A stretch of DNA of 64,000 nt from Octopus sinensis (GCF_006345805.1 NC_043005.1:20956001-21020000); one strand, 5' to 3'; positions 638-63,135 are shown, counted from the first letter of the stretch. Made by a program: numbers and translations. The notes: generated by a model not told the origin, from the letters alone.

Positions 638-871
638 CAAAAGATGAAGTTATTACATTTAGAAGAACTATGATACCAGGAGAGGATACTTTTGAACGAG
701 TGAATAATGTGAGCTTAAAGGAGTGTGCTCAAGCTTGTCATCATAATCCAAAATGTAATTCTTATGAGTACCATGATAAACATAAGTTCTGTGATCAAAG
801 TAATGTGACTCACTTGACTAATAACCTTCAACCCAGCAAATGGGGTTGGGATGTTTACATCATTAACCCAG
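638..871 (+). CDS. Exon PAN-A1 (4-Cys PAN/Apple domain)
   Basis: Acceptor tttctccag|ca, donor ccag|gtcagt. Encodes xKDEVITFRRTMIPGEDTFERVNNVSLKECAQACHHNPKCNSYEYHDKHKFCDQSNVTHLTNNLQPSKWGWDVYIINP, with the PAN motif C-x3-C-x5-C-x-S-Y-x-Y-x6-C. Confidence 0.88.
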
Positions 872-1159
872 GTCAGTGGTGTTTGCATTTCATTTTTTTT
901 GTGTGTTTGCATGTATTGTCATATGTGTATGTATATATGAATCTGTCTGTCTGAATGTCAGTCTTTCTGTCTATCTATCTATCTCTGTCTGTCTCTACCT
1001 CTGGATCCACTGACTGTACCTTCACGGATTTCTCTGGATATTTTTGTTGGAGTAAATCACTCCAATTTACTACAACTTTTGAACTTTTTGAGTTTATATA
1101 CAGTGATCCCAAACAATGAAGGACTTCTTGTACTGAAACCCTTTCTGGACCTTTGATTT

Positions 1160-1570
1160 AGTCCCCAAGCTGACACCTCCACTCTTCCTCGTCTGGCTGA
1201 ACTTGTTCTCTCCCTCAACTACTTCTTGTTTGCGGGCGATTTTTACCAGTAAATTCAGGACTGGCCATGGGAATGAGAATGGGCCCACACTATGCGAACC
1301 TGTTCGTTGGCTATGTTGAGGCCTAAATATTCTCACAATTCACTGGTCCCACTTCCAAACTCTACAGTCATTATAACAATGACTGTATCTGTGTGACCTC
1401 ACTCTCCCACAAACAATTAAATTCCTACCACTTTTTTGTCGAATCCTTCCATCCTGCCCTCGAATTCTCCTGCACTATCTCTAACTCTTCTGTCGAATTT
1501 TTTGACATTTTTGTCACCTCCATCCACTACAAATACACTGACTCACACTCCAGCCTTAACTTCTCTAACA
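1160..1570 (+). mobile_element. Penelope-like element, decayed reverse-transcriptase fragment
   Basis: Broken frames read GLAMGMRMGPHYANLFVGYVE...FHPALEFSCTISNSSVEFFDI..TSIHYKYTDSHS, matching PLE RT motifs GxAMG..PxxANLF and HPxIxFT..FLD..YxKPTD. Confidence 0.75.
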
Positions 1571-1648
1571 CCACCATCCTCCCAGGCACCCATCATCATT
1601 CCTATCATATCACTGACTCCTTTACTCGCGTCTCTAGTAATGACGTTT

Positions 1649-1800
1649 ACTGTATAACAGTATGGATGTTGGTGGTTATGTCAGGTTATCAATCATTTAG
1701 TTGCAAGGTGTTGACAGAACACTAGAAGTAATATTATCTTGTAACAGCGTTCGGCATGTATGTTGAAGATACTGACATTTCATTAGCATCACCATTATAA
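1649..1800. repeat. 152-bp direct repeat, copy 1
   Basis: Matches 3896..4047 with 3 mismatches by eye. Confidence 0.95.
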
Positions 1801-2651
1801 GACAGTTTAAACAGGATAAGAAAATGTGTTTTTAATAGCAACGGGAAGATATCTGTGAAAGTGAAATTAGGCAGTCATGTTTGTGTTAAGAATGTTATTT
1901 AATTTCTTCATACTAGGTTGTCTGTATTCTCTCATTGACAAAATCTTGAGTATAACTTTATAAGGTGTACGCATATAAATCTTTAGTTAATTCATTTTCC
2001 TTATGATAATATGATGAGAGTTCGTACAGGTAAATACCAAGCGAAGAACTGGATTTAAGACTAATCATTTATATACAGAAAGTCAAAATATTTACAGTTA
2101 ATTTATCACAGCATAATAGTGATAGGAAAAATTGCAGTACTTATCTTAAAGAAGAAAAAACATGTTTTGAAAGAGTCTTTTGTGGGATAGATGATAGGAA
2201 AATTTTCTTAACTAGTTCCTGAAAATTACTCTAAAAAACGGTTTAGAAAGGCATGACATAAGGTCATGAAGATGACCGTATATACAGAATAAGTTACAAG
2301 GTCATGTGTGGTAAACTGTCACTGAATAATTTCCCAAAAATCAGTGTTTTATAACTACCGTATACCTTATTCTAGGAACCTCTCCTCATGGAAAAAAAAT
2401 GTTTCACAATGATTAGAATCAACATATGAACAGTAAAATTGACCAATGCAAAAACATAAGACCTTTATAAACAAAAGACAGCCGACACAACTATGGCATC
2501 ATGCTGCTGCTAAATTCTTAACCGTTACAACTGCATCGCCTGCTCTCTCTGTTCTTCCCTGTACTTGAGTTGAAAGGGATGCTACTTGGCTCACTGGTGC
2601 ACTTAACATCTCTGAGACATCTGACTCAGCAATGACACCCCAGTCTCACAC

Positions 2652-2790
2652 CATTTCTGCTCTACTGGTCATTCACTAGAACATCTGTGTTTGGACTGTC
2701 TTTGCACAGGAGCCATCGAGACTTATGCCTTCATTGTTAACAAGAATTAATCTATTCTCTTTGATCTTTTGCACAACATGGGCTCAACTC
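2652..2790 (+). mobile_element. Penelope-like GIY-YIG endonuclease C-terminal remnant
   Basis: HFCSTGHSLEHL...FSL/SFAQHGLN resembles the PLE endonuclease tail HF...GHS..L....LGTL.PxGLN. Confidence 0.55.
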
Positions 2791-3103
2791 ACTTTCTCTC
2801 TTCATCTGACACCAAACACACCTCCTCTCTAAATTTGATATCGACCCAATACTCCACACACACTAGCACTGACCACTTCCCAGCACCCACACAACACACC
2901 ATCAATCATACAACCACTCATAATCTTCAATACCATCATCACACTTACCACTATATGAGCAGTTGCACTCACTGTTTAACTCAGTACACACACCATCATG
3001 CATACTCCCACACCCATGCAAACACATAATACCTGAACGCAGACAATATATTCTCCCACACCCACAGAAGCACATAATAACTGAACAGAGGCTATATATA
3101 CAT

Positions 3104-3173
3104 ACACATGCAACATGCATTAACACATGCAACATGCATTAACACATGCAACATGCATTAACACATGCAACAT
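3104..3173. repeat. 19-bp minisatellite (acacatgcaacatgcatta) x3.7
   Basis: Three perfect units plus a partial one, seen directly. Confidence 0.9.
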
Positions 3174-3459
3174 ACATAGACAAAGATAAATTTTGCTCAC
3201 ATATATACATCATATACATGCACATTGTTTGGTCACAGAAGGGAAAAAACACACACACAGACTCATACACATGCACACACCATGTGAAAAGCACACATCA
3301 ACTGCTACTCACATCACATATACACTCGTCAGAGTCACTCACCTCTATTCACACACATGCTTATGTCAGAGTCACTCACCCCTATTTGCACATGCAGAAT
3401 TCTACATGCCATTCTCACATACACACACATACATGCGCACCTTCTCTTGTTGGGATCAC

Positions 3460-3720
3460 TGGCACTTTATTATCTCCCTTTCATTCAATCTGTTTTTTAC
3501 CAATCATTCACCATGCTGGACCACTGAGATCTACAAGGTTTTCAATCTCTGTTTATTTTCTCATGTTCCTTTCTGTTGAAGAGCGTAAGATTGAAAAGAG
3601 TTTTTTTATTTTTCCCAAGCATCAAACTAATACATATGCTTATTGTTCATACACCTGTTTTTGTCTTTTGCTTTTCTATAAATTTCAACTATATATATAT
3701 TGTTTACCTGGATCCAACAT
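3460..3720 (+). mobile_element. Interspersed repeat, probable Penelope-type 3' tail (related copies about 9690-9880 + and 25480-25720 -)
   Basis: Shared motif gaagagcgtagg..gaaa.g..aaagact..ttcccgagc.ttaaac.aatacat in three places. The family assignment is inference. Confidence 0.55.
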
Positions 3721-3895
3721 TGTGTTTGATGAGGTGATGGTTTGTTGCAGATTTACTATAAAGAAGCAAATGTTTATGACATCATTTCATGGTTGTCTCT
3801 CTTCCAATACATAGTGCAGATGGTTATCAAGGAATGAGATGTGTGTTCACTAATCAACTAAGGGTGGCTGCTTTAAAATGACTGCTGGATTTTTC

Positions 3896-4047
3896 ACTGT
3901 ATAACAGTGTGGATGTTGGTGGTTAAGTCAGGTTATCAATCATTTAGTTGCAAGGTGTTGACAGAACACTAGAAGTAATATTATCTTGTGACAGCGTTCG
4001 GCATGTATGTTGAAGATACTGACATTTCATTAGCATCACCATTATAA
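3896..4047. repeat. 152-bp direct repeat, copy 2
   Basis: Matches 1649..1800; offset 2247 bp. Confidence 0.95.
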
Positions 4048-4272
4048 AGTGTGAAATTGTCAATATGCAGTGAATATGGTCTTTTTACAGTATAAAGTTG
4101 AAATATATCCCATATAGATTTGAATTAATCAAAAGTTTTGTTCATATACAATCTACACATATATGCATGCATATATAGAAGTATGTATGCATGCATACAT
4201 GAACATGTGTACATATGTGTTTGTATGTGTGTATGTGTTTATGTGTGTGTGTATATATATATATATATATTT

Positions 4273-4309
<37 letters not shown>

Positions 4310-4887
4310 CACACATGTCTAGTAGTATTGTTCTTATGAAATATATAGAACTGCTTAACAAGGGCCAAGGTGGAACCTGAGACAAAAGATAAAAATTAAG
4401 ATATAAACTTCAATTAGGCAATCAACTTTTTTATACATAGTCGTAAAGTTATAAATTTGACTTAAAATACTTGTATAGATATTAATACATTTCGACACAT
4501 ATTAGAGTTTTAAAATTATCTTTCAAAATATAAATATATATATAAATATACATGAAAATATGTATAAATAAAACCCTTGTAGGATATATATGGAAAGAAG
4601 TGTGGGAAAAAGAGAAATGATAAAAACTTTTTTCTGTACTAAAATTAAGAGTGGTTAAGAGATTCAATTTAAAGATCTATAAAATTAAATGTGTTTTTTT
4701 TTTTTAAATGTATAAATGGAATATGAGTTATGTAATACAATTCGAGGAAGTCCACTTTCTCCAGCTGTTTCCATAGTTGATGTCCTGGTAGAAATATTAA
4801 TATAAATCTTAAAAGGTATTCTCATAAAAATCACATTCTTGACAACTTTTGGTTATTATAGTGTGATGCATATAGGTTTATATAAAA

Positions 4888-5585
4888 CTAGCAGCATAGC
4901 CCGGTGTTGCCCGGGTATGTAAGAGCCCCTAGTAGGCAACGACTAATCCCAATCTAGTCCTTCCCCTCTAGGGAACGAAGGCGCATGTGTAGGTTGCAAT
5001 GTCTTCTCTTCACTCCCAAATAACTATCAAACAGCTATTGATAATTCAACCCAACTAATTCCTACCAGGAAGAAATTACATTCGAGACTTTACTCCCAAC
5101 ATTATGCTAATAGCTGCTGCAGCTGCAAGTTATTCGAATACTTTTTTTGCTTAAACTTTCTTTATAACTACCACCCCAAACGTTTTACCTTAAATTTTTG
5201 ACATGCCCTAAGGGTCCTCAGATGCTACTTGCAAACTCTTGGTTTATTATAAACTGCTTTTGTCGTGTGCACCAAAATTGCACTCAAATTGCTGCCCGCT
5301 TTTTTGTCACTCAAATTGCTGCCCGCTTTTTTGCCGTTTTTGTACATTTTTATACATTTTGATGTTGCATATAAAAAGCTTAGATTCTCGACCCCATGTC
5401 GAATTTATCAATTTTTTTCAGAACTGGGGGAACTTTTCAAAATTTTCGCTGCGTTAGTTTTGAATTATGACATTGGGCTATGTGTGTGTCAAGTTTCATC
5501 AGAATCGGTTGAAAGCCGTGGTCAGGGTGAGGGTACAACCTGACAGACACACAGACAGACAAACTGCCGTTTATATATAGAGAGA
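4888..5585 (-). mobile_element. Non-autonomous Helitron-like element
   Basis: On the minus strand it begins a|TC(TCTCTATATA) and ends in a GC hairpin (cccgggcaacaccggg) followed by CTAG|t, which are Helitron termini with A/T insertion and no TSD. It contains a 27-bp tandem duplication near 5281-5335. Confidence 0.7.
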
Positions 5586-5899
5586 TTTCATTCTTACATA
5601 TGCAAATGAGAGAGTGGAGAACATGGAATGATGGGACAAGTACATTAACCTATTGATACTTAAATTTAATTAAATACAGCACAGTGAAAGTTTTCACAGT
5701 ACTAAGAGCTAAAAAGTTTCAAGTTGCAGGCACTCTTCCAAATCATCGAATATGTTTGGTTCTAAAAATTTTCAAAAAAGTGGAATGGAATTTATGACTA
5801 CATGAAGGAATCGCATCAGAGAATTTATTTAATGTATTTAAATGATATGATCAAAGATGATGTATGATTCCCTTATACATAACCTGCATTTATTCGAAC

Positions 5900-6129
5900 T
5901 AGCACGATGAAGGTTGGCGGGGCTCTGCAATTATGGACTAGGATAAAGAATAATCAATGTTGCTATCTCTTAGGTAGTGTATATATGAGGAGATAGTTGT
6001 TGAGTTTTTATACCTAACTTTAATAAAAGAATTTAAGTGGGTTCTATATCTCCTCTTAAAATTAATCGTGCCTCCTATATAAACTTTAGTTTTTTGGTTA
6101 TTTACTTTTACTGTATTCTTATACACCAC
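5900..6129 (-). mobile_element. Penelope-like GIY-YIG endonuclease fragment
   Basis: VYKNTVKVNNQKTKVYIGGTINFKRRYRTHLNSF...STTISSYIHYLRD is a GIY-YIG core. Confidence 0.8.
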
Positions 6130-6824
6130 ATTTTTCCCAAGACATGAACTGGCAAGAGGACATGATTGAAGTACTCTACAGCTTCATGTTTATTTTTAAA
6201 ATTGTTTTTTAATTTTTTGCAGGCTGGTTCTCAGCTACATGTAGCTGTAGAGTGCCTGGAACTTTTAACTGCTCTTAATTTTAGTACGAAAATATTTTTA
6301 TCAGTTCTCTTTTTCTCACATTTTTTTCCATATATATCCCACATGGGTTTTATTTACATGTATTTTTATGTATATTTATAGGTATATTTATATTTTTTGA
6401 AAATATTTTTAAAGATATTCATATGTGTTGATATCTGTTAAGATATATATACACATTTTAAGTCAAATTTATAACTGTATGAGTATGAGTATGATTGCCT
6501 AATTTGATTTTATATCGTAATTCTTATATATATATATATATATATTATTAAAGTGGAAAAATTATCAGAAAAGCAATTTCTATACATTTTTAGAAATATA
6601 TAATAGTGTACTAAGGATGTTTTTATATGTTAAGACTTAAGTCTCGAGTGTTTCTCAAGTCTGCACATGGCTTCGGTTTCCACGTATACAGAACCTTTAG
6701 TAACTCTTTGACAAAGATTAAATTTGTTGCAATAATAACTGTTCTATCCTTTAGAGTGTGCTTCTTTTCTGATATATATTTTATTGACTATATATATGTT
6801 TGTATGTATATTTATATATATATA

Positions 6825-8880
6825 CTAGCAGAGACACCCGCCGTTGCTTGGGATTAAAATGGCATAGTTTGTATATAATATATTACATTTATGTTGAAAC
6901 AGGTGATATAGGAATGTGCATCATTGACAACAAAACATTTGTGGAGTAAATGTTGGGCTAATTTGACTGGTAGTTTTGGCAATGTTACCTGACCACCTGC
7001 GTAGCACATACCATTTGTTTCATTTGAAAATTTTAAAGTTCTCTAGAAAAGAGAGTTTGTGTTTAGCACATGAATTTGGACAGAGTTATTATTTTTATAA
7101 CAATGGGATGGATCATATCTGAAAACAACTTCAGGAGTTGTGAAGAACAAATTTGTACGTAGTCTGTTTCTGAGAGCTATTCTATTGGACCTCTGTCTAA
7201 TCATTAAAACATTGATTTAATGATGCAGCATTAAGTGCTACAACATGCATTTACTGATGTTGAGAAATTCTCATCTAGCTTCTCTCTTCAGACTCTTGCC
7301 TTCGGTTTTCTACAATCCGCCTTGCTTTATACTTGTTTCTGGAGAGATTACGTCTTTTCTTTGGAGGCATATTTTTCCCAATATTGTAAACAAAAAATTA
7401 TTAATATGGAAAGAAATTATACATTAATCCCTATTTTTGTAAGCAGTTGTATCCGTAAAAATTTTATTTGAAGAAAGCAGAAATTGAAAGAAGAGAAAGT
7501 GAAAAGGACAAAGAAAGAAAGTGAAAGATGTATGTATGTCTAAATGAAATGGACGTGTGTGTGAGTGTGCTCATGCTTGCATGTGTGTATGTGAGAGAGA
7601 AAGAGGGTGAGAGAGATAGAGTGAGTGAGTGAAGGTGTGTGTTGTGATGATTGGTGTCTTTTAAGGTACACGCAATATAGGAAATGTGACGTCATCACAT
7701 AAAATTTTAACGATAGTTGATTTCTGGAAAAAATGATTTAAAATCCAAATATGTGAATGGAAATTAAGTTTAATTTGTAGCCAAAATAGTACCAAATCAT
7801 TTGATAATCCATATGTCAAAATCTGTAACTTAGTTTTGGAAAGCATAAGGAATATATTGGGTTGTCCGCTAAGTTCATGCCGATTTTTAAAGGAAAGAAA
7901 AAGGTCAATAAATACTTGCCATTACATTTTTAATCAACCAAATATGAACCATTTTGTTGCACAATGCGTCTCCATCTTTCCTTTAACTTGAAAAATACCC
8001 TCTTCCCAGAATTGAAATGGTTTCATGGCAAAGAATTCATCAAGGTATCTTTTTACATCATCCAAAGAATTGAAATTTTTACCATTACGACTATTCTGCA
8101 GAGACCTGAATAAATGGAAATCTGAAGGAGCAATATCTGGTGAATATGGAGGGTGGGGTAACACATCCCAGCCGAGCTGCAGCAATTTTTGTCTGGTTCC
8201 CAAAGCATCAAGTGCCGAAAATGAACTTTCTTATCTTCCATTTTAAAGGATTACAGAATTAACACAGATTATAGGAAAATAAACCTTCTTCCATGAAAAG
8301 ATGGCTTAAACTGTCCTCTAAATGGAGATGTAGTCAAATCCTATTTTATCAACTCAACCATGTTCTAAAATAAGTTGAAAGGTAAGCTACTATAAATCGG
8401 CATGAACTTTCTGAACAACCCAATATAATATCAATGAGCAGACCTTTGCATGGTAGCTAGACCTGGAAGAAATAGTAGCCAAATCTCCCTCAAAACACGC
8501 TACTGACAATTCTTCCTATTATGTAGTTTGAATTACAAACTGTACTAAAAATTAAGATTATTAACCCAACAGAGAGAGGAAAGAAGAGAGACAGCATAGC
8601 GACAGTTTTGGCTGACTGTCATCTTGTACTCCCCTTGTTGCTTGCAAAATGGTATGTCTGGTTGTGTGAGCAACTGGTTGTTTTAATGGTGGAACAAACA
8701 GGTCATTAAAGATTACAAAAATAGCGATTCTCACTTTGAAACTAACGATTTTGAAAATCTTTTTCAATTATGGAATGCCCCGCTCTCTCATGTACCCATG
8801 TTTAAAATTTCAGTGCAAATGGATGAATAATACTTGAGTTATGAGCGCACAAACAGACTGACAGAACAGATTTTATATAT
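6825..8880 (-). mobile_element. Probable Helitron-like element with nested mariner (boundaries uncertain)
   Basis: CTAG plus hairpin (cccgccgttgcttggg) at 6825, and a typical opposite end cagactgacagaacagattttatatata near 8850-8880. That both ends belong to one element is inference. Confidence 0.4.
7857..8423 (-). mobile_element. Internally deleted mariner (Tc1/mariner) transposon, 567 bp
   Basis: 30-bp TIRs at 7857-7886 and 8394-8423 (26/30 identical) with TA on both sides. Transposase C-terminus LGWDVLPHPPYSPDIAPSDFHLFRSLQN at 7934-8203 on the minus strand. Confidence 0.92.
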
Positions 8881-8884
8881 ATAT

Positions 8885-9260
8885 ATATATAAAACTGAGA
8901 ATGTGTGTCTGTCTGTCTGTCTCCCTAAAACTTGAGAACTACACAGCCAATTTCATTCAAATTTTACACATGCCTTACTTAAGGTCCGGGGAGTGTCATT
9001 GGCAAAAGAAATGTTTAACTTCTTTCCTAGGGCGAGCCCACAGCAATATCACATCTTCTCCACTATTTCAGTATTACGTGTTCAAAGTGAAACAAAAACA
9101 TCTCTCTATTGTAATGCAGACACTTTAATTTTAATACTGAAACTATTAAAGTGAAAGTATTATTTAACAGGGATGAACCATTAACAGTGGTCATACATTT
9201 TGCTAGAAGAAGATCTGCTATGGTCTGATATGCTACACCACTGGTTTTCAATTCATATTA
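8885..9260 (+). mobile_element. Helitron-like element 5' portion
   Basis: tatataaaactgagaatgtgtgtctgtctgtctgtc resembles the 5' ends of the other Helitron-like copies; truncated. Confidence 0.4.
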
Positions 9261-9291
9261 ATCAAATTAATATTCAATTTTTCACCCTTAT

Positions 9292-9324
<33 letters not shown>

Positions 9325-10139
9325 ATTAGCAATTCGTATAAAATTGCATCAATGACTTGAACTTGAATAAGTGGTTTCACATAAATTTGGATAAATTAAA
9401 AAGGTTTATTGTTATTATTATTATTACTGTTTGACTATTGTAATCACACTCAGGAAACAAAGCTGTTAAACTGTTAACCACATAGCCTTGCCAGTGTTTT
9501 TACATATATGTATGTTGTGGTATGTATGTGCATTGATATGTGCATCTCTATATATATGTAAGTGAATATCATTTTGAGGTTATCTCTATAGGATTTATCT
9601 AAAATTCTGATCACGCACTGTAAGAATGAAATTTTGTACAGAAATACATCTAATTAAACACTGTGACCAAAAGCAGAAAAATAAATAATGGCTCACTAGC
9701 CACTAAACCTTTTTTCTATTTTCACTCCCTGTTTATTTCTGTGTTCCTTTTGTCGAAGAGCGTAGGCTTGAAATGGAAAAGACTTTCTCCCGAGCATTAA
9801 ACCAATACATCTGTTTGTTGTTTACACACCCGTCTTCATCTTTTGTTATTTTTGTAAATTCTCACAATAAATATATACAGATATATATATATCAAGAATT
9901 GTTGTCCTCTCATCAGCACTTCATCTAACCTATCAACTATCCACAAACACATTGTTTAAATACTAAAACCTTAAAATGATATGATTGTTTATACATCGTA
10001 GGACACAGCATTGACTAATTGACTATGATATATTTCATGTATATTGGTAGGAAAACAAAGTACTTTTATATTAATTGATGTGTATTGTATTATGTATATA
10101 TCATGGCTGATCTTACATATCAGTTTCACACTAGGGGTT

Positions 10140-10760
10140 TAATGGAATGTCAAATAACAGTCTTCAAAGATAGCATGACAGTTATGAATGACATATTTTG
10201 ACTGCTCTTTATTGTTGGAAGTGAACAGACACATCCAGTTTGTAGTTGCTGTGAAAATGACAATGAGATCAGTGCAGACAACATCTGAATGTCATATAGT
10301 CTCTTTTGGGGAGCAATTGCGAATCAAGAGCAGCAAAAATAGTACATTAACTTGGTGCTGAAAACAAATTCCTACATGTTGAAGTGAGCTCCTCAGGATG
10401 CACTCTCTTCCTGATGACCTCCCATGCAATTCTAAATCAGTCAGACTAGTATACTTCAAAGGAGACAAAGTTGAAATGCTCAGCATACCAAAAACAGCCC
10501 ATGCATGGGTATGTTTCCCTGAAGACTTGTAGAAGACTGATACGGAGCAAGGTCTCTCTTGGATTTCTGAGTGCTACATCACTTGTCACTTCGAAGGCTA
10601 CGCATTTGCAATCTAAGAACAGGAGATAGCTACTGAATAACTCACCAACAAAAAGGATAGTGAAGTACTTGGAGTTCCAAGTTACAACCAAAAATGTAGA
10701 TTATTTCATATTTCTGTGGACGACATCAACCGTGATTAGCAGCTTTCCAAAAATCTGCAG
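10140..10760 (+). mobile_element. Possible highly decayed hAT (Buster/Charlie-like) transposase remnant
   Basis: Only weak motif fragments (GSEQTHPVCSCC; ISVDDINRD*QLSKNLQ); needs an HMM check. Confidence 0.25.
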
Positions 10761-10924
10761 ACTCACTCATTATAAATTCAATCTGTTACTAGAATAGGAA
10801 AACTATGCAAGACTTAAGGGATATTGTTTACAATATTTACATTTCAATACTGGATCTTTGTATCTTTATCTGAAACCAGCTCCTACTTCTGAAGAAGAAT
10901 TTAAAGGATTAAAAACGGAAGAGA

Positions 10925-10979
10925 AACAAACACATACATACATGCATAAATACATACATACATACATACATACATACAT

Positions 10980-11028
<49 letters not shown>

Positions 11029-11160
11029 TACATACATACATACATACATACATACATACTTACATACATACATACATACTTACATACATGCATACATACA
11101 TACATACATACATACATACATACATACATACATCTGTCCATTCTTCCATACATACATACA
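10925..11160. repeat. (TACA)n/(CA)n compound microsatellite
   Basis: Seen directly, about 170 bp upstream of Sushi1. Confidence 0.95.
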
Positions 11161-11332
11161 AAAAATAAATACATATTTGCATGTTTGCATGCTGTTAAGT
11201 ATATTTTTATATTCCAGTGCAGAATTGTCAGTTTGATTCACTTTCTTGTAATGTTTTTTTTTTAATTCCTTATTCTCACCTGCCTTTAAACATGCAAGCA
11301 CCATTAGTGTAAATTTCTCTTTCCAATTCCAG

Positions 11333-11503
11333 ATTATTCGCAAATTGAGTGTGGACCTCCAAAAGAAATTGTTGGTTCAGTGAAGTCCTATAATTCCACC
11401 TTGTATAAATCTGAAGTCACCTATACTTGCCCAAAAGGAGAAAAACTGAAGTCAATGTGTGAAAAGAACAATGAGTGGACGCCAGTTGTATCTTCTTGTA
11501 ATG
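11333..11503 (+). CDS. Exon Sushi1 (CCP/SCR domain)
   Basis: Acceptor ttccaattccag|at, donor aatg|gtaata. Encodes xYSQIECGPPKEIVGSVKSYNSTLYKSEVTYTCPKGEKLKSMCEKNNEWTPVVSSCN, with the CCP pattern CGxP...VxYxC...C...W...C. Confidence 0.88.
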
Positions 11504-14195: not shown

Positions 14196-14432
14196 ATTCT
14201 GCGATCCATTTTGTGAAAGTAAATGATGCATCTCTGGATGTGACGGGGAAAATATTGAGTAAGAATGCAGTAACAGCAGACGCTTGTGCAGAAAGATGTC
14301 TTTCTGATGAAAATTGTTTATCATTTGAGATGTCTAAAGGAAATGGTAAATGTTACTTATTGAAGCAAACAGCAGCTTCCTCCAAGAAAATAAAAACAGA
14401 CAAAAGCAGAGATTATTACCAACGAGTAAAAT
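14196..14432 (+). CDS. Exon PAN-B1 (4-Cys PAN/Apple domain)
   Basis: Acceptor ttttaactctag|at, donor aaaat|gtaatt. Encodes xSAIHFVKVNDASLDVTGKILSKNAVTADACAERCLSDENCLSFEMSKGNGKCYLLKQTAASSKKIKTDKSRDYYQRVK, with C-x3-C-x5-C-x-S-F and a terminal DYYQR. Confidence 0.87.
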
Positions 14433-20449: not shown

Positions 20450-20680
20450 CTGACAAGCCTTTGCAGATTAAAAAAGTTAGCATACAAGAGAAGGATACTA
20501 TTGGAAGGCTTAGAAATGTGAACTTAAAGACATGTAATGAAGCTTGCCATCAGTATCCGGGATGTAATTCTTATCAGTACAATGAGAAGGCTAAATTCTG
20601 TGATATGAGCAATGCAACTGAGTTGACTGGTAACTTTAAACCCAACAATGGTAGTTGGGATGTGCACATAATTAACCCAG
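20450..20680 (+). CDS. Exon PAN-A2
   Basis: Acceptor ttttttcag|ct, donor ccag|gtctgt. Encodes xDKPLQIKKVSIQEKDTIGRLRNVNLKTCNEACHQYPGCNSYQYNEKAKFCDMSNATELTGNFKPNNGSWDVHIINP; paralogue of A1. Confidence 0.88.
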
Positions 20681-22141: not shown

Positions 22142-22566
22142 CAGGTATTGTAGCCATCCTCATCTATCAAAATACATGAGTGATATCAGAATTCTGAGCA
22201 ACATTTCTTTGGCCAATTCCCATCAGGAAGGTAAGTTAGGAGGCTGCTATTGTGCTTCAAAGACAAACTAAATGACAATCTCAAGTAATGCAGCATTTCC
22301 TTTTCTTCCTGAGAAAACAAATCATCAGAAAGCAGGTCCTGTCATCATGGTTTTGTGGAATGAAATAAATCTGGCTTTGCCATCTACTCAAGATATCTCA
22401 GAAGGAATGAGCCACTAGCACTCACGTAAACTAACTCATCAACCTGTTTCATTTACCAAAAGATTTGCTAGGTACTATTAGGCCTCAAAAGACACATTCA
22501 TGTCCATAGAACATAATTAACACTTTACTAAAACTTCATTTGTCATTTACAACACACAAATCCATC

Positions 22567-44230: not shown

Positions 44231-46028
44231 CATACATAATTAAATGAAACCTTCTCAGACAATAAGGACCAGATATAAATGGGCTGAAATAAGGTAAGCT
44301 TTGCTTGGCTGATAGAGCAAGAATCGTAAGGAACTCACTTGACCATGTGGCCTTTTTACTCTAGGGAAAAGTGTTTAGCTAGTGTCCTCATGAGTGCCCT
44401 ATTGCAAGCTTGGAGTTCCCCATTCAACAAATAGAACTATGACAGACACTTAGAAACTCATTATGGTTCAAACAGATGTAGGGGAGATAACCCAATCCCA
44501 CCTGAAGCACTACCTCCCGGGTCCTTCTGGATGCATTTATTTTTGTTTATGAATCTAACTGACAATGATGTTTTCCTCCCTCTAACCGCAGAGACGTTAT
44601 ATGCCTCTGGCCATTTGAGTCTGATGGGTTGCCTATACTGCTAAGCACTTTTGATGTGTAAAACCATTGGACACTCTCTGATGAGTCATAACAATCAATC
44701 AGCAACCAGATCCACTCAGAAGTCTCTTGTTCACCCTGGACTATAGTAGGAGACTTGTTTAAGGTTTCACGCATTGAAATTGAACAGAGAAACATATTTT
44801 TGGAAAGCAAACTTATTTCCATACAGCCATGCCTGCTTCACTCAATATATATTTGTTCAAAATGAACAGCTGTGAAAAAATACTCAGGGTCACTTCATGA
44901 ATGGAAAATAAATAGTTAAGTGGCTACTTATTGAACAATGATATTATGATTAACTGAAATTTATCAGTGAGTGATGAAATATTTATGTTAATGACTTCTC
45001 CTGGTTATATGATTGTAAAAATCACTTTTTTTATTCTCATTTCACTAAAGATCTAATTTTGTTGAATAAAATTTCTTAGGTTGATATATTAAGTTGTAAA
45101 TGTTCACATTGGCTACATACTTATATCAATCATCTTGGTGAAGATCATCCTTTAATGTCCACTGTCCATGCTGGCATGGGTGGAATGGTTTCACAGGAGC
45201 CAGCCAAGCAGAAGCCTGCATCAATTTTCTGTGACTGTTTTGGCAAGATTGTTACTGCTGGATACCCTTCCTAACACCAACCACCCAGCAGAGTGGACTT
45301 AGTGCTTCTTATTCTTACTTGACACAAGCACAGGTGAGGCCAGTTTTGGCAAGGTTTTTACAGCTGGAACCCTTTCTAAATGCCAACCACTTTACAGTGT
45401 GGACTGTTTGCTTTTAAAGTGGCACTTGCACTGACAGGGACACCAAGTAACTTGCAAGACAAAATCTTTTGAGAAGGAAGAGTCATTGGAGTAGATGATC
45501 AAAGTAAAAGTATTTTTGTTTTCCTAAGGAAAAAAATTACACAATCAGTAGAGTGATGTTTCTTGTCATGAATAGACTAGCCATATTCAGTTACATTCTT
45601 TTACATTCTGGATTCAAATCCACCAGGGGGTATTTCACATTTCATACTCCTGAGATTGATAAAACAGCGTTATTTAAGAACTAAATTTCATTCATTTTCA
45701 TGTATCCTCACACTGCAAAATGTATGACTTTGTTACCATCGATGATAATTATAATTATTCTTGCTGTTGAAGGTGAAGTATTGACAAAATCATTTGAGCA
45801 TCAGACAAAATGTTTTGTGATATTCATTTTGGCTCTTGAACTTCTGGGTTCAAACCTGGCTTTTGACAGCTTCATCTTTCCAAGGCCAGTAAGTAAAAAT
45901 GCTGCCAGTCAAGTGTTGTGGCCTATTTTAATCAGCCAGTTCTTACATCAAAGTTTTGGCATTCATTCTATGTTATAAAATATTATTTTTGTTAATTTTC
46001 AATAATCTAAATTTTACTTTAATTTCAG

Positions 46029-46268
46029 CTGTTGAGAGCCTTTTTTTGAAAATAAACGATGCAATTCTGGATGTATCTGGGAAAATATTGTGGCCTAAGA
46101 AAAATGCAACAGCAGAAGCCTGTAAAACAAAATGTCTGTCTGACATTGATTGTTTATCATTTGAAATAAATGAAGGAAGTGGTCAATGTTACTTATCAAA
46201 GGAAAGTGCAGCTTCTTCCAACAAATTAAAGTCAGCCAAAGGCACAGATTACTACCAACGAGAGCATT
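46029..46268 (+). CDS. Exon PAN-B2
   Basis: Acceptor taatttcag|ct, donor catt|gtaatt. Encodes xVESLFLKINDAILDVSGKILWPKKNATAEACKTKCLSDIDCLSFEINEGSGQCYLSKESAASSNKLKSAKGTDYYQREH; paralogue of B1. Confidence 0.87.
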
Positions 46269-48670: not shown

Positions 48671-48904
48671 CCAATAATGAACATTTCATGCTTAAAAAAG
48701 TTAGCATACCAGTGGGGGATATTTTAGGACAGCATAAGAATAAGACCTTAAAGGAATGTAATGAAAAATGCTACAGATATCATGGCTGTAATTCTTACCA
48801 GTACAGTGAGGAAAATAAATTATGTGTTCTGAGTAATGTGACTCAGTCGACTGATAAACTTAAACCCAGCAAAAAAAAAGTAGATGTGTACATAACTAAC
48901 CCTG
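48671..48904 (+). CDS. Exon PAN-A3
   Basis: Acceptor ttttcttccag|cc, donor cctg|gtcagt. Encodes xNNEHFMLKKVSIPVGDILGQHKNKTLKECNEKCYRYHGCNSYQYSEENKLCVLSNVTQSTDKLKPSKKKVDVYITNP. Confidence 0.88.
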
Positions 48905-54240: not shown

Positions 54241-55699
54241 TCGGTTGTCATGTATGTATGCGTGTGTGTTTGTGTCTGTATATATTTCATCATCGTTCTT
54301 TAACAGTTGTAATTAATGTGTTATTTAGTATTGAAATTTTTAAATGCTTTCTTGTATATATGAGAACATTTCAATTTAAATGTTATGAAATACATTTCCT
54401 CAAGACAAAAATCACATTTAAAATTCCTAGTATTGTACAATGGTGCATAACTAATAATGGACCACTTTAAATCTTGGTTAATTTTCCTGTCTTTTAAATC
54501 TCAAATGCATTTGCTAATATTTATAGAATTAATAACATTTGAAATATTTCTTCTAAACTTGAATGAGGAAGAATTATTATGCAATCTAGATTTCCAAATT
54601 GTAGCATATGGATATTGGCAATAATATGTAGAATCCCCTCTTATGACCTTTCATTTATACACTATATTCTTCCTTGGACACTGATTTTATAAAGGGCAGA
54701 TAATTTTGTTTTTGAAATTACAAAAGCATTCTCTTGCATGTGGTACTCATAGTCAAGAGAATTAGTACTAATCCTCCTCTTAGAAGTATGTATTAAAATG
54801 GTATTATTATCAGTATTATAATCATAATAGATAGTAATAATATTAATTGCTTTTCATGTAATCTAATATGCATAATTTAAAACAAATTGTTTTACCATAT
54901 TTAATAAATAGATAACCAATTGTTGTGACATAAAATTTCAATGTTTGTAATTGTTGTGACATAGAACCCCTATGTTTATTTGTTATCATGAACTAGAAGG
55001 AATGCCAGGGTAATAAACATTTTAAACCACATATACTTAACATATATGCTTCATGTATTTGCTGGTAGGTTGCTATTTAGTGTGGTGAAGAATACTCTCT
55101 CAAAGCACTGGGTGTTAAAACACCTGAAAGTCATGGCCAGGTGAGACAGAGTACAACTCTTCTCCAATCTCATCTAGGAGTGATGGGTATTAACAATTTC
55201 ACCACTTTTGTGGTTTGTCAACATCATGTCCCTTCAGGTTGATGGCCCTGCTCGATCTGTAGAAAGGGTGTAGGTAGATAATCTATAAAATGTACCCAAG
55301 TGTAAGCTATGGACACATAAGAGGTGCAGCAATATCAAAGGAAGACTAACTGGAAAGATAGTTTTTGTATGTGGCAGATGCTCAGGAGCATAAACACTAA
55401 GTATTTGTGGTTAGTAATGTTTATTATGCTAGCACTGCTATTTCTTATTTGATTTAATTCTTACATATGCATTGTCTGGACATACTCACTCATGGTTTGC
55501 ATGCTATGTGCATATAAGTCATGACCTATGAAATGATTCATTTCCAATTATGTTCAGGTGTATGATATTAAGAAGACATTGATGTCCATCACTCCTAGAC
55601 AAGATTAGAGATGAGTTGTCTCTCCTGTCCATGACTTTCAAGTGTTGTAACACCTCTTGGGTTAAGAGAGAATTCTTCACCATGCCAAATGTCTGCCTA

Positions 55700-56589: not shown

Positions 56590-56760
56590 TTTTCTCAAAT
56601 ATTAACTGTGGATCTCCAAAAGATGTTGCTGGTGCATTCAAGTTGTACAATAGCACCACCTATCAATCTGAAGTGATCTATACTTGCTCAGATGGAGAAC
56701 AACTAAAGTCAGAATGTGAAAAGGACAATAAATGGACTCCTGTAGCATCTGTTTGTAATG
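56590..56760 (+). CDS. Exon Sushi3
   Basis: Acceptor atcatttccag|tt, donor aatg|gtaacg. Encodes xFSNINCGSPKDVAGAFKLYNSTTYQSEVIYTCSDGEQLKSECEKDNKWTPVASVCN. Confidence 0.88.
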
Positions 56761-57809
56761 GTAACGTAAATAGTTTCTCTCTTGTCATTGTCTGTGTAAT
56801 TTAGTGTAATTTTGTGTGTTAAATGGATTTGTCAGAGAAAGTCTGGTTGATTCCATGACAATTTCCACTGTATTTGTGGCATGTGGGAGGAAGAGAGGAA
56901 TCTGGTAGTGTCAGCCCACAAGTCCTCCCCAAATGCTTGCAACAGGGTGGACATGAGTAATTGTACCCAAGGGCCGGGAATTAAATTAGGTGATGGAGTA
57001 AAGTCTGCCAACCAAACAGTGGAAATGTGGAAGCTTGTTCCCAACAGTAGGGTTCTACATTGATTCCATCTACCAACTTTTCTTTAGCTGTGAAGCATAT
57101 TTTTAAGCACATGATCTATTCCCTCTTCTACCATCCTCCATCCCACCTTTCGTTCTCCCTCACATATCCACCTAACTACCTGCATGCAAACTGCTTCCTT
57201 CATATACCAGCCATTTCTAGCTCCCACTGTGTTTTCAAAATCTTGTGACTCACCCACCTTGCTGCCCTCTCCAATCCCCAATCCATTTCACTATAAACAC
57301 CACCCTGTAACTTGGGTGTACAACTCCTACTTCCCTCTCTCATATTTTCATTGTCTTTTTCTCTGTTTTCTCTCCTTCATCAGAGGAAGACATGTCTCTT
57401 TTCTAATGCAAGATCCACTTATTTGGTGGCCTCACTCAGCCGGTGCCATGCATAAATCATCCAGTACACTCTATAAAGTGGTTGACATTAGCAAGATCAT
57501 CCAGCCACAGAAACCATGCCACAACAGACAGAAGAACTTGGTGCAGTCTTCTGATTTGCCTGTTTCTATTAGACTGTCCTATACATACCAGCATAGAAAC
57601 TAGATACTAAATGATGATGATCCTGATGATAATGACCATGATTCCACTCAGTACCACAGGCTTGTGAAGTAAACTTCTTGCTCTTAAAGTTACACCTGAA
57701 TATTTCTATGCAGATCTTCACTAAATTTCTAACATGGCGTTTTCCACTTGTACCATGTATCATTATCCAAAACCCTGTGCAATATTATGCAATATAATGA
57801 GTCATTATC

Positions 57810-58260
57810 GTCATCATCATCATCATCACCGATTAACGTCTGTTTTCCATGCTGGCATGGGTTGGACGGTTTGACTGAGGTCTGGAGATCTAGTGGCTGC
57901 ACCAGGCTCCGAACTGAACTGGCAGAGTTTCTACAGCTGGATGCCATTTCTAACGGCAACCAATCCAAGATTGTAGTGGGTGCTTTTTATGTGCCACCAG
58001 CACAAGAGTCAGTAAAGTAGGCCTGGCAGCAGTCACGTTGGGATGGTGCTTTTTATGTGTCACCAGCACAGGTGCCAGTCAGTGGGTACTGGCGTCGGTC
58101 ACGATCAGTTGGTGCTTTTTATGTGCCACCAGCACGGGCCAGTCAGTGGGTACTGGCATCGACTGTATTCGGATGATGCCTTTTATGTGCAATTGGCATA
58201 GGAGCCAGCCAGGGGGCACCGACCCCAGCTATGATATTGGTTTTACTTGTTTCAACAGGT
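57810..58260 (-). mobile_element. SINE-like repeat with internal tandem units
   Basis: catcatcacc...ccatgctggcatgggttggacgg...ggtgctttttatgtgccaccagcac, about 4 units. Confidence 0.8.
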
Positions 58261-58299: not shown

Positions 58300-59590
58300 T
58301 TTTAGCAGGGCTGGACGTGTGTGGCTACCATCTCACTTTAGTTGCCAGGTCTTCTCAATCACAACATATCTCCAAAGGTCCCAGTCTCCTGTCATTGCCT
58401 CTGTGAGGTCCAATGTTCGAAGGTCATTCTTCACCACTGCATCACATGTCTTCCTGTGTCTACCTCTTTTACAGGTTCTTTCCACAGTTAGGGAGTGGCA
58501 CTTCCTCACGCAGCTGTTTTCATTCATATGTAATACGTGGCCATACCAGTGCAGTCACCTCACTTGCACACCACTTTTGATGCTTCTTATGCCCAACTTT
58601 TCTCTCAGGACACTTACACTCTGTCGTGTATGCACAGACATTACACATCCAGTGGATCATACTAGCTTCATTTCTTTCAAGCCTACGCATGTCCTCAGCA
58701 GTCATGGCCCATGTTTCACTGCTGTGTAGCATGGCAATTCACACACTTGCATCATACAGTCTACCTTTCACCCTGAGTGGGAGGCCTTTAGTTGCCAGCA
58801 GAGGTAGGAGCTCCCTGAACTTTGGCCAAGCTATTCTTATCCTAGTTGCTACACTTTCAGAGCAACCATCCCCACTACAGATTTGGATGCCTAGGTAGCA
58901 GAAGCTATTAACTACTTCTAGTTTCTTCCCCTGGCATGTGATGGAATCTGTTTTCTGTACTTCTTCAATGTTTACTGCCCCTGTGCATTTACCACATGCA
59001 AAAAGTAGTTTCCTGGCTAATCTTTCTTTGATATTGCTGCACCTTTTACATGTCTATAGCTTACACCAGTTACATTGTATGGAGTTTCTGCCCATGCCTT
59101 TTCTACTGTTTGAACAGGGCCATCTACCTGAAGTGGGGTTGTGATTTGACAGCCTTCCTACTTACTCGGATTTGGCTTTGGCTAGGGTAACCCTAAGGTC
59201 CTTCAATTCTAGACCTTGCTTCCACACCCTAAAGTTTTTCTCCAATCCTGGCAGTGACACGGCTATTAGAGCAAGGTCATTAGCACAGAGGAGCTCCCAG
59301 GGGCAGCTGGTCTTAAATTCCTCTGTTATTTTCTGGAGGACTATAATGAATAAGAGGGGGCTTAGGACTGATCTTTGGTGAACCCCTAATTCTACTTGGA
59401 ATTCTTCCCTTTGCTCATTGTCAACTCTCACCTTACTGACTATGTCCCTGTACAGAGCTTTTACAGCTCTTACGAGCCACTCAATTATTCCCAGTTTCCA
59501 CATTGACCACCAGATAAGGGATCAGGGGTTCCTGTTAAAAGCTTTCTCCAAGTCAACAAATGCCAAATACAAAGGTTTATATATATGTAT
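58300..59590 (-). mobile_element. RTE-like LINE, RT to 3' end
   Basis: YLAFVDLEKAF, KLGIIEWLVRAV.ALY...SKVRV, GVHQ.SVLSPLLFII, PWELL.ANDLAL, LHSSETWAMTAEDMRRLERNEAS, RGRHRKT.D.VV. Confidence 0.88.
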
Positions 59591-59829: not shown

Positions 59830-60330
59830 TGCTGATGGCATGTAAAAAGCACCATCCGAATGTGGTCGATGCCAGGTCCGCCTAACTGGCCCCTGTGCCA
59901 GTAGCTTGTAAAAAGCACCAACCAGTCGTGACTGATGCCAGTACCCCGTGACTGGCTCCTGTGCTGGTGGAACTCAGAATGTACCATCCGAACATGTTTG
60001 TTTCCATGCCTGCCTTATTGGCTCCAGTGCTGGGGACATGTCAAAAGCTCCAACCAATCATGACTGACGCCAGTACACTCTTATTGATTGCTGTGCCGGT
60101 GGCTCATAAAAAGTACCATCCCAACATGATCATGGCCAGGTCTGCCTTACTGGCACATAAAAAGCACCCACTACTCTCTCGGAGTGGTTGGCATTAGGAA
60201 GGGCATTCAGCTGTAGAAACTCTGCCTGACCAGTTTGGAGCCTGGTGCAGCCACTGGCTCTCCAGACCTCAAACCATCCAAGCCATGCCAGCATGGAAAA
60301 CGGACATTAATCAATGCGGATGATGATAAT
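59830..60330 (+). mobile_element. SINE-like repeat with internal tandem units and GAT tail
   Basis: gcatgtaaaaagcacc units; tail ccatgccagcatggaaaacggacatt...gatgat. Confidence 0.78.
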
Positions 60331-60639
60331 ATACGTATATACTAGCCCAGTGATGCAAACAGGATAATTGCACTCAAAACATGTATATTTAAAAAATATC
60401 TTTTATGAAGATAATGCTATAAAAATTTCATACTTACGTACACATGCATGTATGTATGTGTGTATATTTCTATAAGTATATGCATGTTCATCCATGCATC
60501 TTTTCTCTCCACTTTTCCTAGGAAGGTCATGTAGTGGAATCTACAGGTATCTCCTCCAGATTTTTCTATTAGAAGCAATTGTAATTAGATATTCTGACTA
60601 GATTCCCAAGCATAACTGACTTAAACTATGGATATTATC

Positions 60640-62090
60640 AAACCATCACATTCTCAATCAGCCTGTTCACCTGTTAGTGACTCAGCTTAAAGAATCCATC
60701 GTGTGAGTCTTTCTTGTGACATTCTAATCAAATGTCTGTAATATCAGAGCTTGTGATCACTCAATGTGCAGAAGTAGCACCTCAACCTGGAGAGACTACC
60801 TCATCTTTGAGTTATATAAACTGTTAATTAATGTTACTCTAAAAATCCTTTGGTGGAAAACCATTTCATCTGCTTGACTTCATAATGGTATCCTTTTATT
60901 CATTACCCAACATTCATGACCACACGTGAGGATAGTCATGATGCTCAAATTAAAGACAAGTCTGGTTCTTAGAGTAACCTCTTCTCTTCCGCAGATTGAA
61001 TGCAGGAGCTAGTATATTACCATGCCGACTCCTGCAATTTTTACATCTAATTTTGCCATCTGCTTCTTACACTCATGGATATGGATCTGAAATGCTGAAA
61101 CTTATCCAGTTGACTTCAACTTCAACTCAAAGTGAATTGGGAAGACTCTCTTGACAGGATCATTGTCTTAGTCTGTGCTACACCAATTTTACTCCTCTGA
61201 TGCAGTAGTTAGCACTGAACTCAATCAGTGCATGCTGGTGATTGCCTTCTTATGGGTGAAAGAAGACAATGTCATCTACAAATATCAGCCAACCAATCCT
61301 AAACCCACTGGTTTTAATATCAATTTCACAATGGCCTTGCCACATTTGAGTGCTTTAATCACCTCTAGGACTTTGGCTTCTGGAAGCTTAGATTGCACTT
61401 GTAGATACATCTTTTGTCTACCTTTTGCTATGAAGTCAGTGAATGTTTTACTAGAATACTTTATTGGTCAATTTAAAGTCAGAGTCCAGCTTAACCTCAA
61501 TCTTCCCATAATTTAGCCTTTAGCAGGTTTACTCTTTCTGTTGCATCTCAGTGCAACATATATTTAAAATGAGAGACTCATTTCCAATGCACACACTATA
61601 AGCCTTTTTGTATGGCATCTTTGTATTCCTGGTTAAATCAGGGAGTTATTTTACCTCTCAGTGCCACACTAAGTTGCTTTCCTTTACAACATTGTTGAAA
61701 CTGTTGTGCAAAACATTCTTCATTCTATTTATTTATCCCCAGTTTATTTAGAAAGGTCTCTGAATTTGGATTCAGTAGTGTCTATATATTTGTTTCTGAT
61801 CCCATCATTCAGCAGACATTCCCACTTTATTCTGTAATTTAACTGATCTTACCAGTTTTGTGAGTTGCAGACAACTAGGTGGTGATCAGTTGATTGCATA
61901 GACCATCTTTTCACATAAATATCCCATCATGGAAACAAAGAGATCCAAGATAATAGCAAGATCTATCAGTGACCTCTGTCCCATTTGTAGCAAGTCATAA
62001 AAGGTGACAATATGACGTAATGGTTGTTTGCCCAAACAAGCATAATTGTTGGTATCCCATTGGTTAAAATTACTGCCCATATACGAAATC
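60640..62090 (-). mobile_element. Very decayed LINE (RTE-like)
   Basis: Faint motifs only (FTDFIAK similar to FxDFxKA; DPV..VFPIHF similar to GD.LSP.LF; LIRMS..RLT.WI). Confidence 0.4.
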
Positions 62091-62181
62091 TAAACTTTCA
62101 TCAAAGAAATGTTTCGTGAAATATAGTTCTTAGAATTCGGATATAAACAGTTATAAAAACCCTGATTTTTGGGAAATTACT

Positions 62182-62307
62182 CAGTGTTCGTAGGATTGTT
62201 ACTTAACTCCACGACACTCATTACAGTGTTCATAGGATTGTTACTAAACTCTACGATACTCACAACAGTGTTTGTAGGATTGTTACTAAACACCACAACA
62301 CTCACTC
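62182..62307. repeat. 42-bp minisatellite x3 (cagtgttcgtaggattgttactaaactccacgacactca...)
   Basis: Units start at 62182, 62224 and 62266. Confidence 0.9.
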
Positions 62308-62964
62308 ATTGAGAAATTGGCTATTTTTTATGCCATGTCTATGATAAAAATCCAACAAGACATTTGAATTGTTGTGAACTCTAGTAGTTAGTATGAAAGA
62401 TTAGCTCATGTGAATTTTAAGTCGTAATTCTCTACGACAAAATGACTTTACTTTCCAATTGTACTATAAATGCTAAATGCACATAAATAAAATAATGTAG
62501 CAATTATTTTCTCTTTCTTCACATTCTTCAACTCGTTAATGAAATTTATTTCTGCAGTTATGAAACTGTATTTTTTATAGTGGTTAAAAGAACATGAATT
62601 TGTTTATCTTCAACATACATGCATGCATAAAATGCCCGTTAGTGTTTCAGAGTAAATATTTCTCGCTATGGTGTTTACGTTGCTGGAGTCAGGATTTATG
62701 TATAATGATAAAACTTATAAGTAAGTTATAAGTGATGGGTTTATCAATATATATTCCTACTTCAAATGTAAAATATATTTATCTATTTCCAAATAGGAAA
62801 CATATAAAAGTAGTGTTACACAAACAGTAACCAAATGTAGCTATAAAAAGTGGTGACCGACTATCCTGTCCCACTCAATATCTTTTCTTCCAAGTTTATC
62901 TCCTCATTCTTTCCCTCCTTCTAATACATGCAGCAATGATAAACATCTCTGTTTTCAATTACAG

Positions 62965-63135
62965 AATATGCACAAATAAACTGTGGAACTCCAAAAGATA
63001 TTGCTAATGCATTGAAGTCTTATAAAACCTCCTCCTATAAAGCTGAAGTGACCTATACTTGCTCAAAGGGAGAAAAGTTAAAGTCAACATGTGAAAAGGA
63101 CAACAAATGGACTCCAATACCTTCCGCTTGTAAAG
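62965..63135 (+). CDS. Exon Sushi4
   Basis: Acceptor ttcaattacag|aa, donor aaag|gtaatg. Encodes xYAQINCGTPKDIANALKSYKTSSYKAEVTYTCSKGEKLKSTCEKDNKWTPIPSACK. Confidence 0.88.

Follow-up and report, generated by a model that had tools for sequence, protein, structure and literature searches.

Octopus genomes carry a long tandem array of PAN-PAN-Sushi exons, likely a paralogue of a short GON-domain gene

Tandem PAN modules in apple- and PAN-repeat proteins are protein- or carbohydrate-binding units. Factor XI and plasma prekallikrein contain four apple domains and Toxoplasma MIC4 contains six, and the ligands of PAN and apple modules include heparin (HGF), galactose (MIC4 and SML-2) and kininogen (factor XI). 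Sushi modules similarly act as binding units and as spacers. Here, we analyze nine exons, each encoding a single PAN or Sushi module, on the plus strand of a 64,000-nucleotide stretch of octopus DNA (GCF_006345805.1, NC_043005.1:20956001-21020000; hereafter the window). Our results make it probable that these exons are working coding cassettes from the interior of an array, so far seen only in Octopus, built by amplification of a B-A-S(-S) unit, in which B and A are two types of PAN module and S is a Sushi module, and that this array is a tandem paralogue of a short gene encoding a GON domain. Its product would be a secreted multivalent polymer.

The cephalopod GON proteins have the same three module types in the order PAN-B, PAN-A, Sushi and are encoded on the same chromosome as the array in Octopus bimaculoides. 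Their GON domain is homologous to one at the 3' end of the array, where it is split over three exons. These proteins possess one B-A-S or B-A-S-S unit in about 450-500 residues, whereas the array contains dozens to hundreds of repeats, and the window, unlike the short GON genes, has no signal peptide match or GON domain found in its DNA. The apple- and PAN-repeat proteins (factor XI, plasma prekallikrein, MIC4, Eimeria MIC5, SML-2, leech antiplatelet protein and the N domains of HGF and plasminogen) share their fold with the structural model of A1, the first exon of the window. However, the PAN modules of the array are 12-24% identical to them, retain a minimal four-cysteine core and alternate strictly with Sushi modules, with no attached protease or kringle and with a copy number one to two orders of magnitude higher. 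Factor XI and prekallikrein consist of four contiguous six-cysteine apples followed by a trypsin-like protease, an arrangement that the product of the window does not have. Complement receptor 1, CSMD1-3 and SVEP1 resemble the array in having one Sushi module per phase 1-1 exon, an extracellular beads-on-a-string design and growth by tandem exon-block duplication, but they lack PAN modules and carry CUB, VWA, EGF, pentraxin or transmembrane parts, and the similarity of the array to long Sushi-repeat proteins is confined to the generic Sushi profile. The GON domain (PF08685) at the O. bimaculoides array end is also found in the likely parent gene, in GON-1, ADAMTS-9 and ADAMTS-20, and in small molluscan "GON domain-containing proteins" from Lottia, Patella and Haliotis; unlike GON-1 and the ADAMTS proteins, the array has neither a metalloprotease nor a disintegrin domain nor thrombospondin repeats attached. 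SE-cephalotoxin, with LDLa, Sushi, TSP1 and EGF domains, has a different architecture.

The nine exons were called from a list of stop-to-stop open reading frames (ORFs) combined with codon-level inspection and a splice table. They follow the order A-S-B-A-S-B-A-S-S: A1 (638-871, 78 codons), S1 (11333-11503, 57 codons), B1 (14196-14432, 79 codons), A2 (20450-20680, 77 codons), S2 (40355-40525, 57 codons), B2 (46029-46268, 80 codons), A3 (48671-48904, 78 codons), and S3 (56590-56760) and S4 (62965-63135), which form a Sushi doublet. All nine have a polypyrimidine tract and AG acceptor on their 5' side and a GT donor on their 3' side, and the donors differ by type: G/GTCAGT or G/GTCTGT for A exons, G/GTAA for S exons and T/GTAATT for B exons, with the slash marking the exon end. 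Every exon is in phase 1 at both ends and has a length that is a multiple of three, and the four S exons, each 171 nt, encode one Sushi module per symmetrical phase 1-1 exon. Joined together, the exons comprise 1860 nt, or 620 codons, without a stop. An initial annotation had proposed nine intact, in-frame exons of one domain each, and this holds to the base. In this AT-rich window 5.6% of triplets are stop codons, which gives a single open 78-codon stretch a chance of about 1%; nine of them, all matching domain profiles as well, are not chance occurrences. A hidden Markov model (HMM) made from the nine peptides and scanned against all six frames of the window returned exactly these nine cassettes, with no cassette on the minus strand and no decayed copy. 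We also considered whether a B exon had been lost between S3 and S4 and ruled this out, as the scan revealed no remnant and the S-S doublet recurs in the family.

The assignment of these exons to PAN/apple and Sushi modules, made initially by inspection, is borne out by Pfam, which finds one domain per exon. The spliced product of 619 residues matches PAN_1 in five stretches (E = 1.8e-41, 140.3 bits against a cut-off of 21.4) and Sushi in four (E = 9.5e-11, 42.4 bits against a cut-off of 20.7), and no other Pfam family exceeds its curated cut-off; weak matches to MBD, SH3_3, MANEC and TERT_thumb fall below it and were dismissed as noise. Taken singly, A1 (1.3e-08, 35.0 bits) and B1 (1.9e-11, 44.1 bits, profile positions 2-74 of 76) match PAN_1, and S1 scores just over the Sushi cut-off at 21.2 bits. 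Each cassette has four cysteines at fixed positions, giving 36 over the nine. The cysteines of all five PAN exons are spaced C-x3-C-x5-C-x11-C, and in an alignment of 42 A cassettes, drawn from three species, C29, C33, C39 and C51 never vary. These would be the core cysteines of the two inner disulfides that tie helix to sheet, whereas the PAN modules of the window lack the outer C1-C6 pair found in classical apple domains. In all four Sushi modules the cysteines lie at positions 6, 32, 42 and 55, with a tryptophan between the third and the fourth. The nine-exon product contains ten N-X-S/T sequons and has a calculated isoelectric point of 8.6.

An AlphaFold (AF2) model of A1, built with an alignment of the 42 A cassettes (from the window and the fetched loci), is confident (pLDDT 91.4, pTM 0.81), and its top Foldseek matches are all PAN/apple proteins (probability 1.00, TMq 0.64-0.75, identity 12-24%), including the HGF N domain, the plasminogen PAp domain, factor XI apple 4, leech antiplatelet protein, Toxoplasma MIC4 and Sarcocystis SML-2. 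A1 is therefore predicted to adopt the PAN hairpin-loop fold, in which a central helix packs on an antiparallel sheet, and the Pfam match suggests that the B type is likewise a PAN module. A sequence search of solved structures returned weak single-module matches (MASP-2 CCP, E = 9e-4; TgMIC4, E = 0.005) and no close relative. The exons can be read only as encoding small modules of extracellular type, rich in disulfides and strung in a line, with a fixed scaffold and fast-changing positions elsewhere.

The window is an inner fragment of a larger array rather than a self-contained gene. On O. bimaculoides chromosome CM046610.1, a stretch of at least 567 kb is occupied by cassettes that follow one another head to tail on one strand as B-A-S(-S). 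To extend the gene in both directions we used orthologous loci from O. sinensis (L001, on CM016867.1) and O. bimaculoides (L002, L003 and L005-L007, on CM046610.1). Upstream of the segment orthologous to the window, O. sinensis has B, S and A cassettes at 13.6, 10.8 and 3.5 kb of L001, and downstream of the S4 orthologue in O. bimaculoides a B exon lies at L002 31444. The cassettes thus continue both ways and, in O. bimaculoides, end in a GON C-terminus. A gene of about 62 kb with an A-S-B unit, as first annotated, therefore gives way to a far larger object whose natural unit is B-A-S (PAN-PAN-Sushi): each domain string in the family is a (B-A-S)n series in which every third or fourth unit carries a second S. 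Across about 203 kb of O. bimaculoides array DNA we sampled 104 distinct cassettes, of which 100 are open and in phase from acceptor to donor; the donor GT is at the exact homologous position in 102 and the acceptor AG in 90. The sampled array starts at or before 88.248 Mb and includes LOC128248837 (88.258-88.284 Mb), LOC128248838 (88.292-88.318 Mb), LOC128248839 (88.373-88.420 Mb), LOC128248840 (88.429-88.452 Mb), a model of 4083 residues (from 88.457 Mb) and LOC106869402 (88.794-88.816 Mb). GON exons occur in the sampled array only at its 3' end, as three exons of LOC106869402 (L003 25259-30356; PF08685), and CACHD1 (L003 37416-41495) lies directly downstream. In O. sinensis, two single gene models span 153 and 369 kb.

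These gene models bear directly on how many genes the array contains. It is quite possible that it comprises several separate, ordinary multi-exon genes of the kind annotated in RefSeq (709 to 4083 residues), each with a promoter and ends of its own and with the window covering most of one. NCBI divides the O. bimaculoides region into at least six such loci and that of O. sinensis into at least four, and an A-S-S-B block is present as segmental duplicates in LOC128248837, -838 and -839, as tandem gene duplication would be expected to produce. However, the models all lack a signal peptide and a plausible first exon, the majority open with an internal methionine that lies within a cassette or in read-through intron, and a non-cassette C-terminus (GON) is found only in the last, LOC106869402. 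Furthermore, intact, in-phase cassettes in B-A-S order sit between the RefSeq models and belong to none of them (L007 1-10000, L002 4718-8100, L005 57033-65913 and L006 33250-37745). Read-through intron sequence is present in several models, such as "GTHWQTSEFSIT" in LOC128248838, and long odd stretches occur in O. sinensis LOC118764742. Gene models for this region, in RefSeq as in GenBank, look arbitrary: they come in fragments, with no proper 5' ends, with missed exons and with misleading "SVEP1-like" or "ADAMTS9-like" names. Where transcriptomic or proteomic work on cephalopod secretions relies on such models, it may miss the product or assign it wrongly.

Our tentative suggestion is that the whole array, from a signal-peptide exon to GON, is one unit encoding a secreted protein of 10,000-20,000 residues, or else a locus from which in-frame subsets are chosen. 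A single unit would cover 567 kb or more in O. bimaculoides and probably about 1 Mb in the lineage of O. sinensis, and by extrapolation its product would contain a few hundred PAN and Sushi modules. The narrower idea that transcripts pick subsets of cassettes, as with the variable exons of Dscam or the protocadherins, and so generate many isoforms of a recognition receptor or secreted lectin appears unlikely. The uniform 1-1 phase would keep any subset in frame, and cassette surfaces diverge quickly on a fixed scaffold; however, the models that we compared with DNA (P0001 with L002 and P0013 with L005) use every consecutive cassette and skip none, and we found no signature of mutually exclusive splicing; docking or selector sequences, at which no search was aimed, were not seen either.

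Comparison with other octopuses indicates that the cassettes have been maintained. The window aligns collinearly with a region near 20.79 Mb of O. sinensis chromosome CM016867.1; nucleotide identity is 90-94%, introns included, and lineage-specific insertions occur on either side. This confirms the initial assignment of the DNA to a cephalopod and points to an Octopus species that is related to O. sinensis without being identical to it. The O. sinensis orthologues of the first four exons are 92-97.5% identical in DNA and have identical splice sites: A1 (L001 35509-35742, 91.9%), S1 (38210-38380, 95.9%), B1 (44907-45143, 97.5%) and A2 (54362-54592, 95.7%). Orthologues of all nine exons lie inside O. 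bimaculoides LOC128248838, with 78% protein identity and splice sites kept; for the last five exons these are found at L002 21631-21799 (S2, 91.7% nucleotide identity), 22416-22645 (B2, 93.9%), 24930-25163 (A3, 93.2%), 27100-27265 (S3, 89.8%) and 28487-28655 (S4, 90.5%). The ratio of nonsynonymous to synonymous substitution rates (dN/dS) is 0.42 against O. sinensis (p = 0.014) and 0.65 against O. bimaculoides (p = 0.008), both significantly below 1. The exons are under selection that is purifying but relaxed, or in part diversifying. Copies of a cassette within the window are only 42-62% identical to each other yet are open with every cysteine in place, which argues that they are old duplicates that stayed intact. 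A tree of A cassettes places those of the window as orthologues of particular O. sinensis and O. bimaculoides positions, and additional segmental duplicates in O. bimaculoides suggest block-wise birth and death.

These data also speak to whether the array is silent or decaying, a set of relic duplicates of cassettes from the salivary GON gene that are no longer expressed. We regard this as very improbable. A dN/dS of 0.42-0.65 is high for a structural protein, and exon identity of 92-97.5% is little above the 90-94% of the introns, both of which could be expected of such a relic. However, the dN/dS values below 1 and the splice sites conserved across three species do not fit a dead array, nor does the persistence of nine open exons with canonical splice sites and 36 cysteines among copies of such low identity, nor the proportion of open cassettes and exact donors in the O. 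bimaculoides sample.

The cassettes of the array have their closest relatives within the same genus. A word search of 5.8 billion proteins and a full HMMER pass over 1.84 billion representatives found long PAN-PAN-Sushi arrays only in Octopus. In two protein searches, the second with a padded query so that long models could appear, all close relatives were Octopus proteins, of 380 to 2643 residues, and the orthologues and paralogues in O. bimaculoides, O. sinensis and O. vulgaris are listed as "uncharacterized protein LOC...". Although homologues in O. vulgaris and O. sinensis are named [quoted passage not shown], and the best sequence match among solved structures is the MASP-2 CCP module, orthology to a vertebrate-type Sushi protein (SVEP1, a complement receptor or a selectin-like protein) is effectively refuted, since the resemblance to vertebrate proteins goes no further than individual Sushi modules of a generic kind (a complement receptor 1-like match, for instance, covers 14% of the query at E = 8.8e-7), the family strings hold only A, B and S, with GON in one model and no VWA, EGF, pentraxin or HYR domain, and neither the product nor any family member examined has a lectin or protease domain.

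The relationship of the array to the short GON genes is likely on the basis of sequence. GON-Abd-1 from Abdopus aculeatus (UniProt R4G2C1, 465 residues) has the architecture signal peptide-B-A-S-GON and is 46-53% identical to array proteins over residues 29-242, with E values down to 1e-208 or lower. Its cluster includes O. bimaculoides LOC106874924 (465 residues), O. sinensis LOC115215708 and one O. vulgaris model. LOC106874924 lies at CM046610.1 88.124-88.135 Mb, about 114 kb from the start of the sampled array. GON-SepT-1/2 from squid and GON-Sep-2 and P0021 from cuttlefish share this architecture, with either a single Sushi module or two, and a signal peptide is present in GON-Abd-1, GON-SepT-1/2 and LOC106874924. 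Small Sushi-GON proteins of 300-420 residues are widespread in molluscs (limpets and abalone) and amphioxus in the HMMER search. The same search showed that in Argonauta, and in further sequences of cephalopod-like character, the B-A PAN pair is combined with different partners. The initial annotation could match the architecture to no named gene. The module trio is in fact present in GON-Abd-1/2, GON-SepT-1/2 and GON-Sep-2 of UniProt. That annotation was right in taking the gene of the nine exons as functionally uncharacterised. An AlphaFold model of full-length GON-Abd-1 made from a six-sequence alignment was poor (pLDDT 49) and was set aside.

We envision a scenario in which an old molluscan secreted Sushi-GON protein gained a B-A pair by the time of the coleoids, the resulting PAN-PAN-Sushi-GON gene (about 465 residues with its signal peptide, in squid, cuttlefish and octopus) was tandemly duplicated in octopods, and one octopod copy then amplified its three-exon cassette. 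Because every cassette is a phase 1-1 exon with four cysteines, neighboring cassettes would splice in frame into a beads-on-a-string chain. The product could be a secreted, N-glycosylated, disulfide-stabilised linear polymer, with the GON domain as its single terminal unit. Its many PAN and Sushi modules would let it bind a glycan or protein ligand multivalently and with high avidity, and it could act by cross-linking, coating or agglutinating a repeated target. The source may be a secretory tissue such as the posterior salivary gland. This gland is our best guess because of the likely parent gene, whose GON-named cDNAs reportedly derive from this venom-producing organ (Ruder et al. 2013, J Mol Evol). 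Of the four roles suggested in the initial annotation, the salivary one has the strongest support, though indirect; immune, mucus and egg-coat roles are also candidates.

Several observations weigh against the model of a secreted polymer descended from the GON gene. The window has no start, stop, signal peptide match or GON domain in tblastn, and none of the long RefSeq or GenBank models examined begins with a signal peptide, so secretion and the gene ends are extrapolated from relatives. A search for the signal-peptide exon with the first 30 residues of GON-Abd-1 gave chance-level matches in the window and seven loci, although this divergent 30-residue query has little power. The only possibly spliced multi-cassette sequence outside genome annotation is P0022 (MetaClust, A-S-B-A). 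The tie to the posterior salivary gland, which we take from UniProt names and the reported cDNAs, concerns only the short paralogue. Finally, dN/dS for single exons, calculated from small substitution counts, is 0.80 against O. sinensis and 1.04 against O. bimaculoides for A1, and 1.0, 1.8 and 1.5 against O. bimaculoides for S2, B2 and A3, hinting at diversifying or relaxed selection on single modules; S1, S4 and A2 stay at 0.2-0.45.

If the array is indeed a single unit or a locus of chosen subsets, it would be among the largest secreted modular proteins or exon arrays of any animal and an octopus-specific invention. Lineage-specific expansions in octopus include protocadherins, C2H2 zinc fingers and G-protein-coupled receptors. 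The array would be an expansion of a different kind, in which one three-exon cassette was amplified within a gene to an extreme copy number with nearly every copy open and spliceable, and a clean natural example of how phase 1-1 exon-shuffling symmetry permits runaway domain amplification. If expressed, it would be a concrete candidate gene for a secreted glycoprotein of very large size with a binding or adhesive role in saliva, mucus or immunity. The domains themselves are well known, databases already list the genes, if as uncharacterised or misnamed loci, and short relatives have been named, which removes part of the novelty first claimed for the locus; what seems undescribed in the literature searched is how large and continuous the array is, together with its origin from a GON gene. 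That literature contained no description of the product or function of a PAN-PAN-Sushi array, and its coverage of cephalopod venom mentions SE-cephalotoxin and not the PAN-PAN-Sushi-GON family.

NDUFV1 (Complex1_51K) lies just downstream of the short GON gene in L008 (CM046610.1 88.114-88.145 Mb), and together with CACHD1 it provides a synteny anchor for locating the limits of the array in other cephalopods. Among the more distant relatives, P0034, P0076, P0095, P0113 and P0128 contain the B-A PAN pair as a mobile unit with other partners. Argonauta hians has a signal-B-A-B-A protein and another in which signal-B-A precedes a long cysteine-rich region (source name "zonadhesin-like"). Read by eye, P0095 and P0128 are metalloprotease-like with two A-type PANs, and P0113 consists of signal-B-A, a threonine-rich linker and three cysteine-rich repeats.

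Scans of the window for tRNAs and Rfam families gave no matches. Its introns are much larger than those of O. bimaculoides, where the same nine exons occupy 18.7 kb rather than 62.5 kb, and the initial description of them as transposon-filled is broadly right. A reverse transcriptase of the long interspersed nuclear element (LINE) type lies on the minus strand of the S2-B2 intron (41268-43567), where a frameshift divides it into two ORFs (Pfam RVT_1, 8e-11 and 8e-14), and a reverse transcriptase scrap is found at 59162-59521, also on the minus strand. A 93% identical copy of the LINE reverse transcriptase occupies a non-homologous position in the O. sinensis locus (L001 48155-50051), which suggests that this family was recently active. 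Intron 1 (872-11332) is about 8 kb longer than its O. sinensis counterpart (L001 35743-38209), and O. sinensis has a 3.9 kb insertion upstream of B1 (L001 39819-43724) that the window lacks. A 62-66-nt tandem unit (GGTGCTTTTTACGTGCCACC...) is present at 22941-23258, 25850-26175, 57806-58190 and 59843-60330, has numerous relatives, in either orientation, at the O. sinensis locus, and looks like an octopus satellite-like repeat or one resembling short interspersed nuclear elements (SINEs). A 98-codon ORF on the minus strand (7934-8230) contains …PYSPDIAPSDFHLF… and has no Pfam match at E <= 0.01; judged by eye, it looks like the C-terminal end of a transposase of the mariner/Tc1 type. Long (ACAT)n and (TA)n microsatellites at 10932-11160, 25316-25475, 26945-27295 and 28425-29082 give rise to many spurious "YIYIYI" and "HTHTHT" ORFs on both strands.

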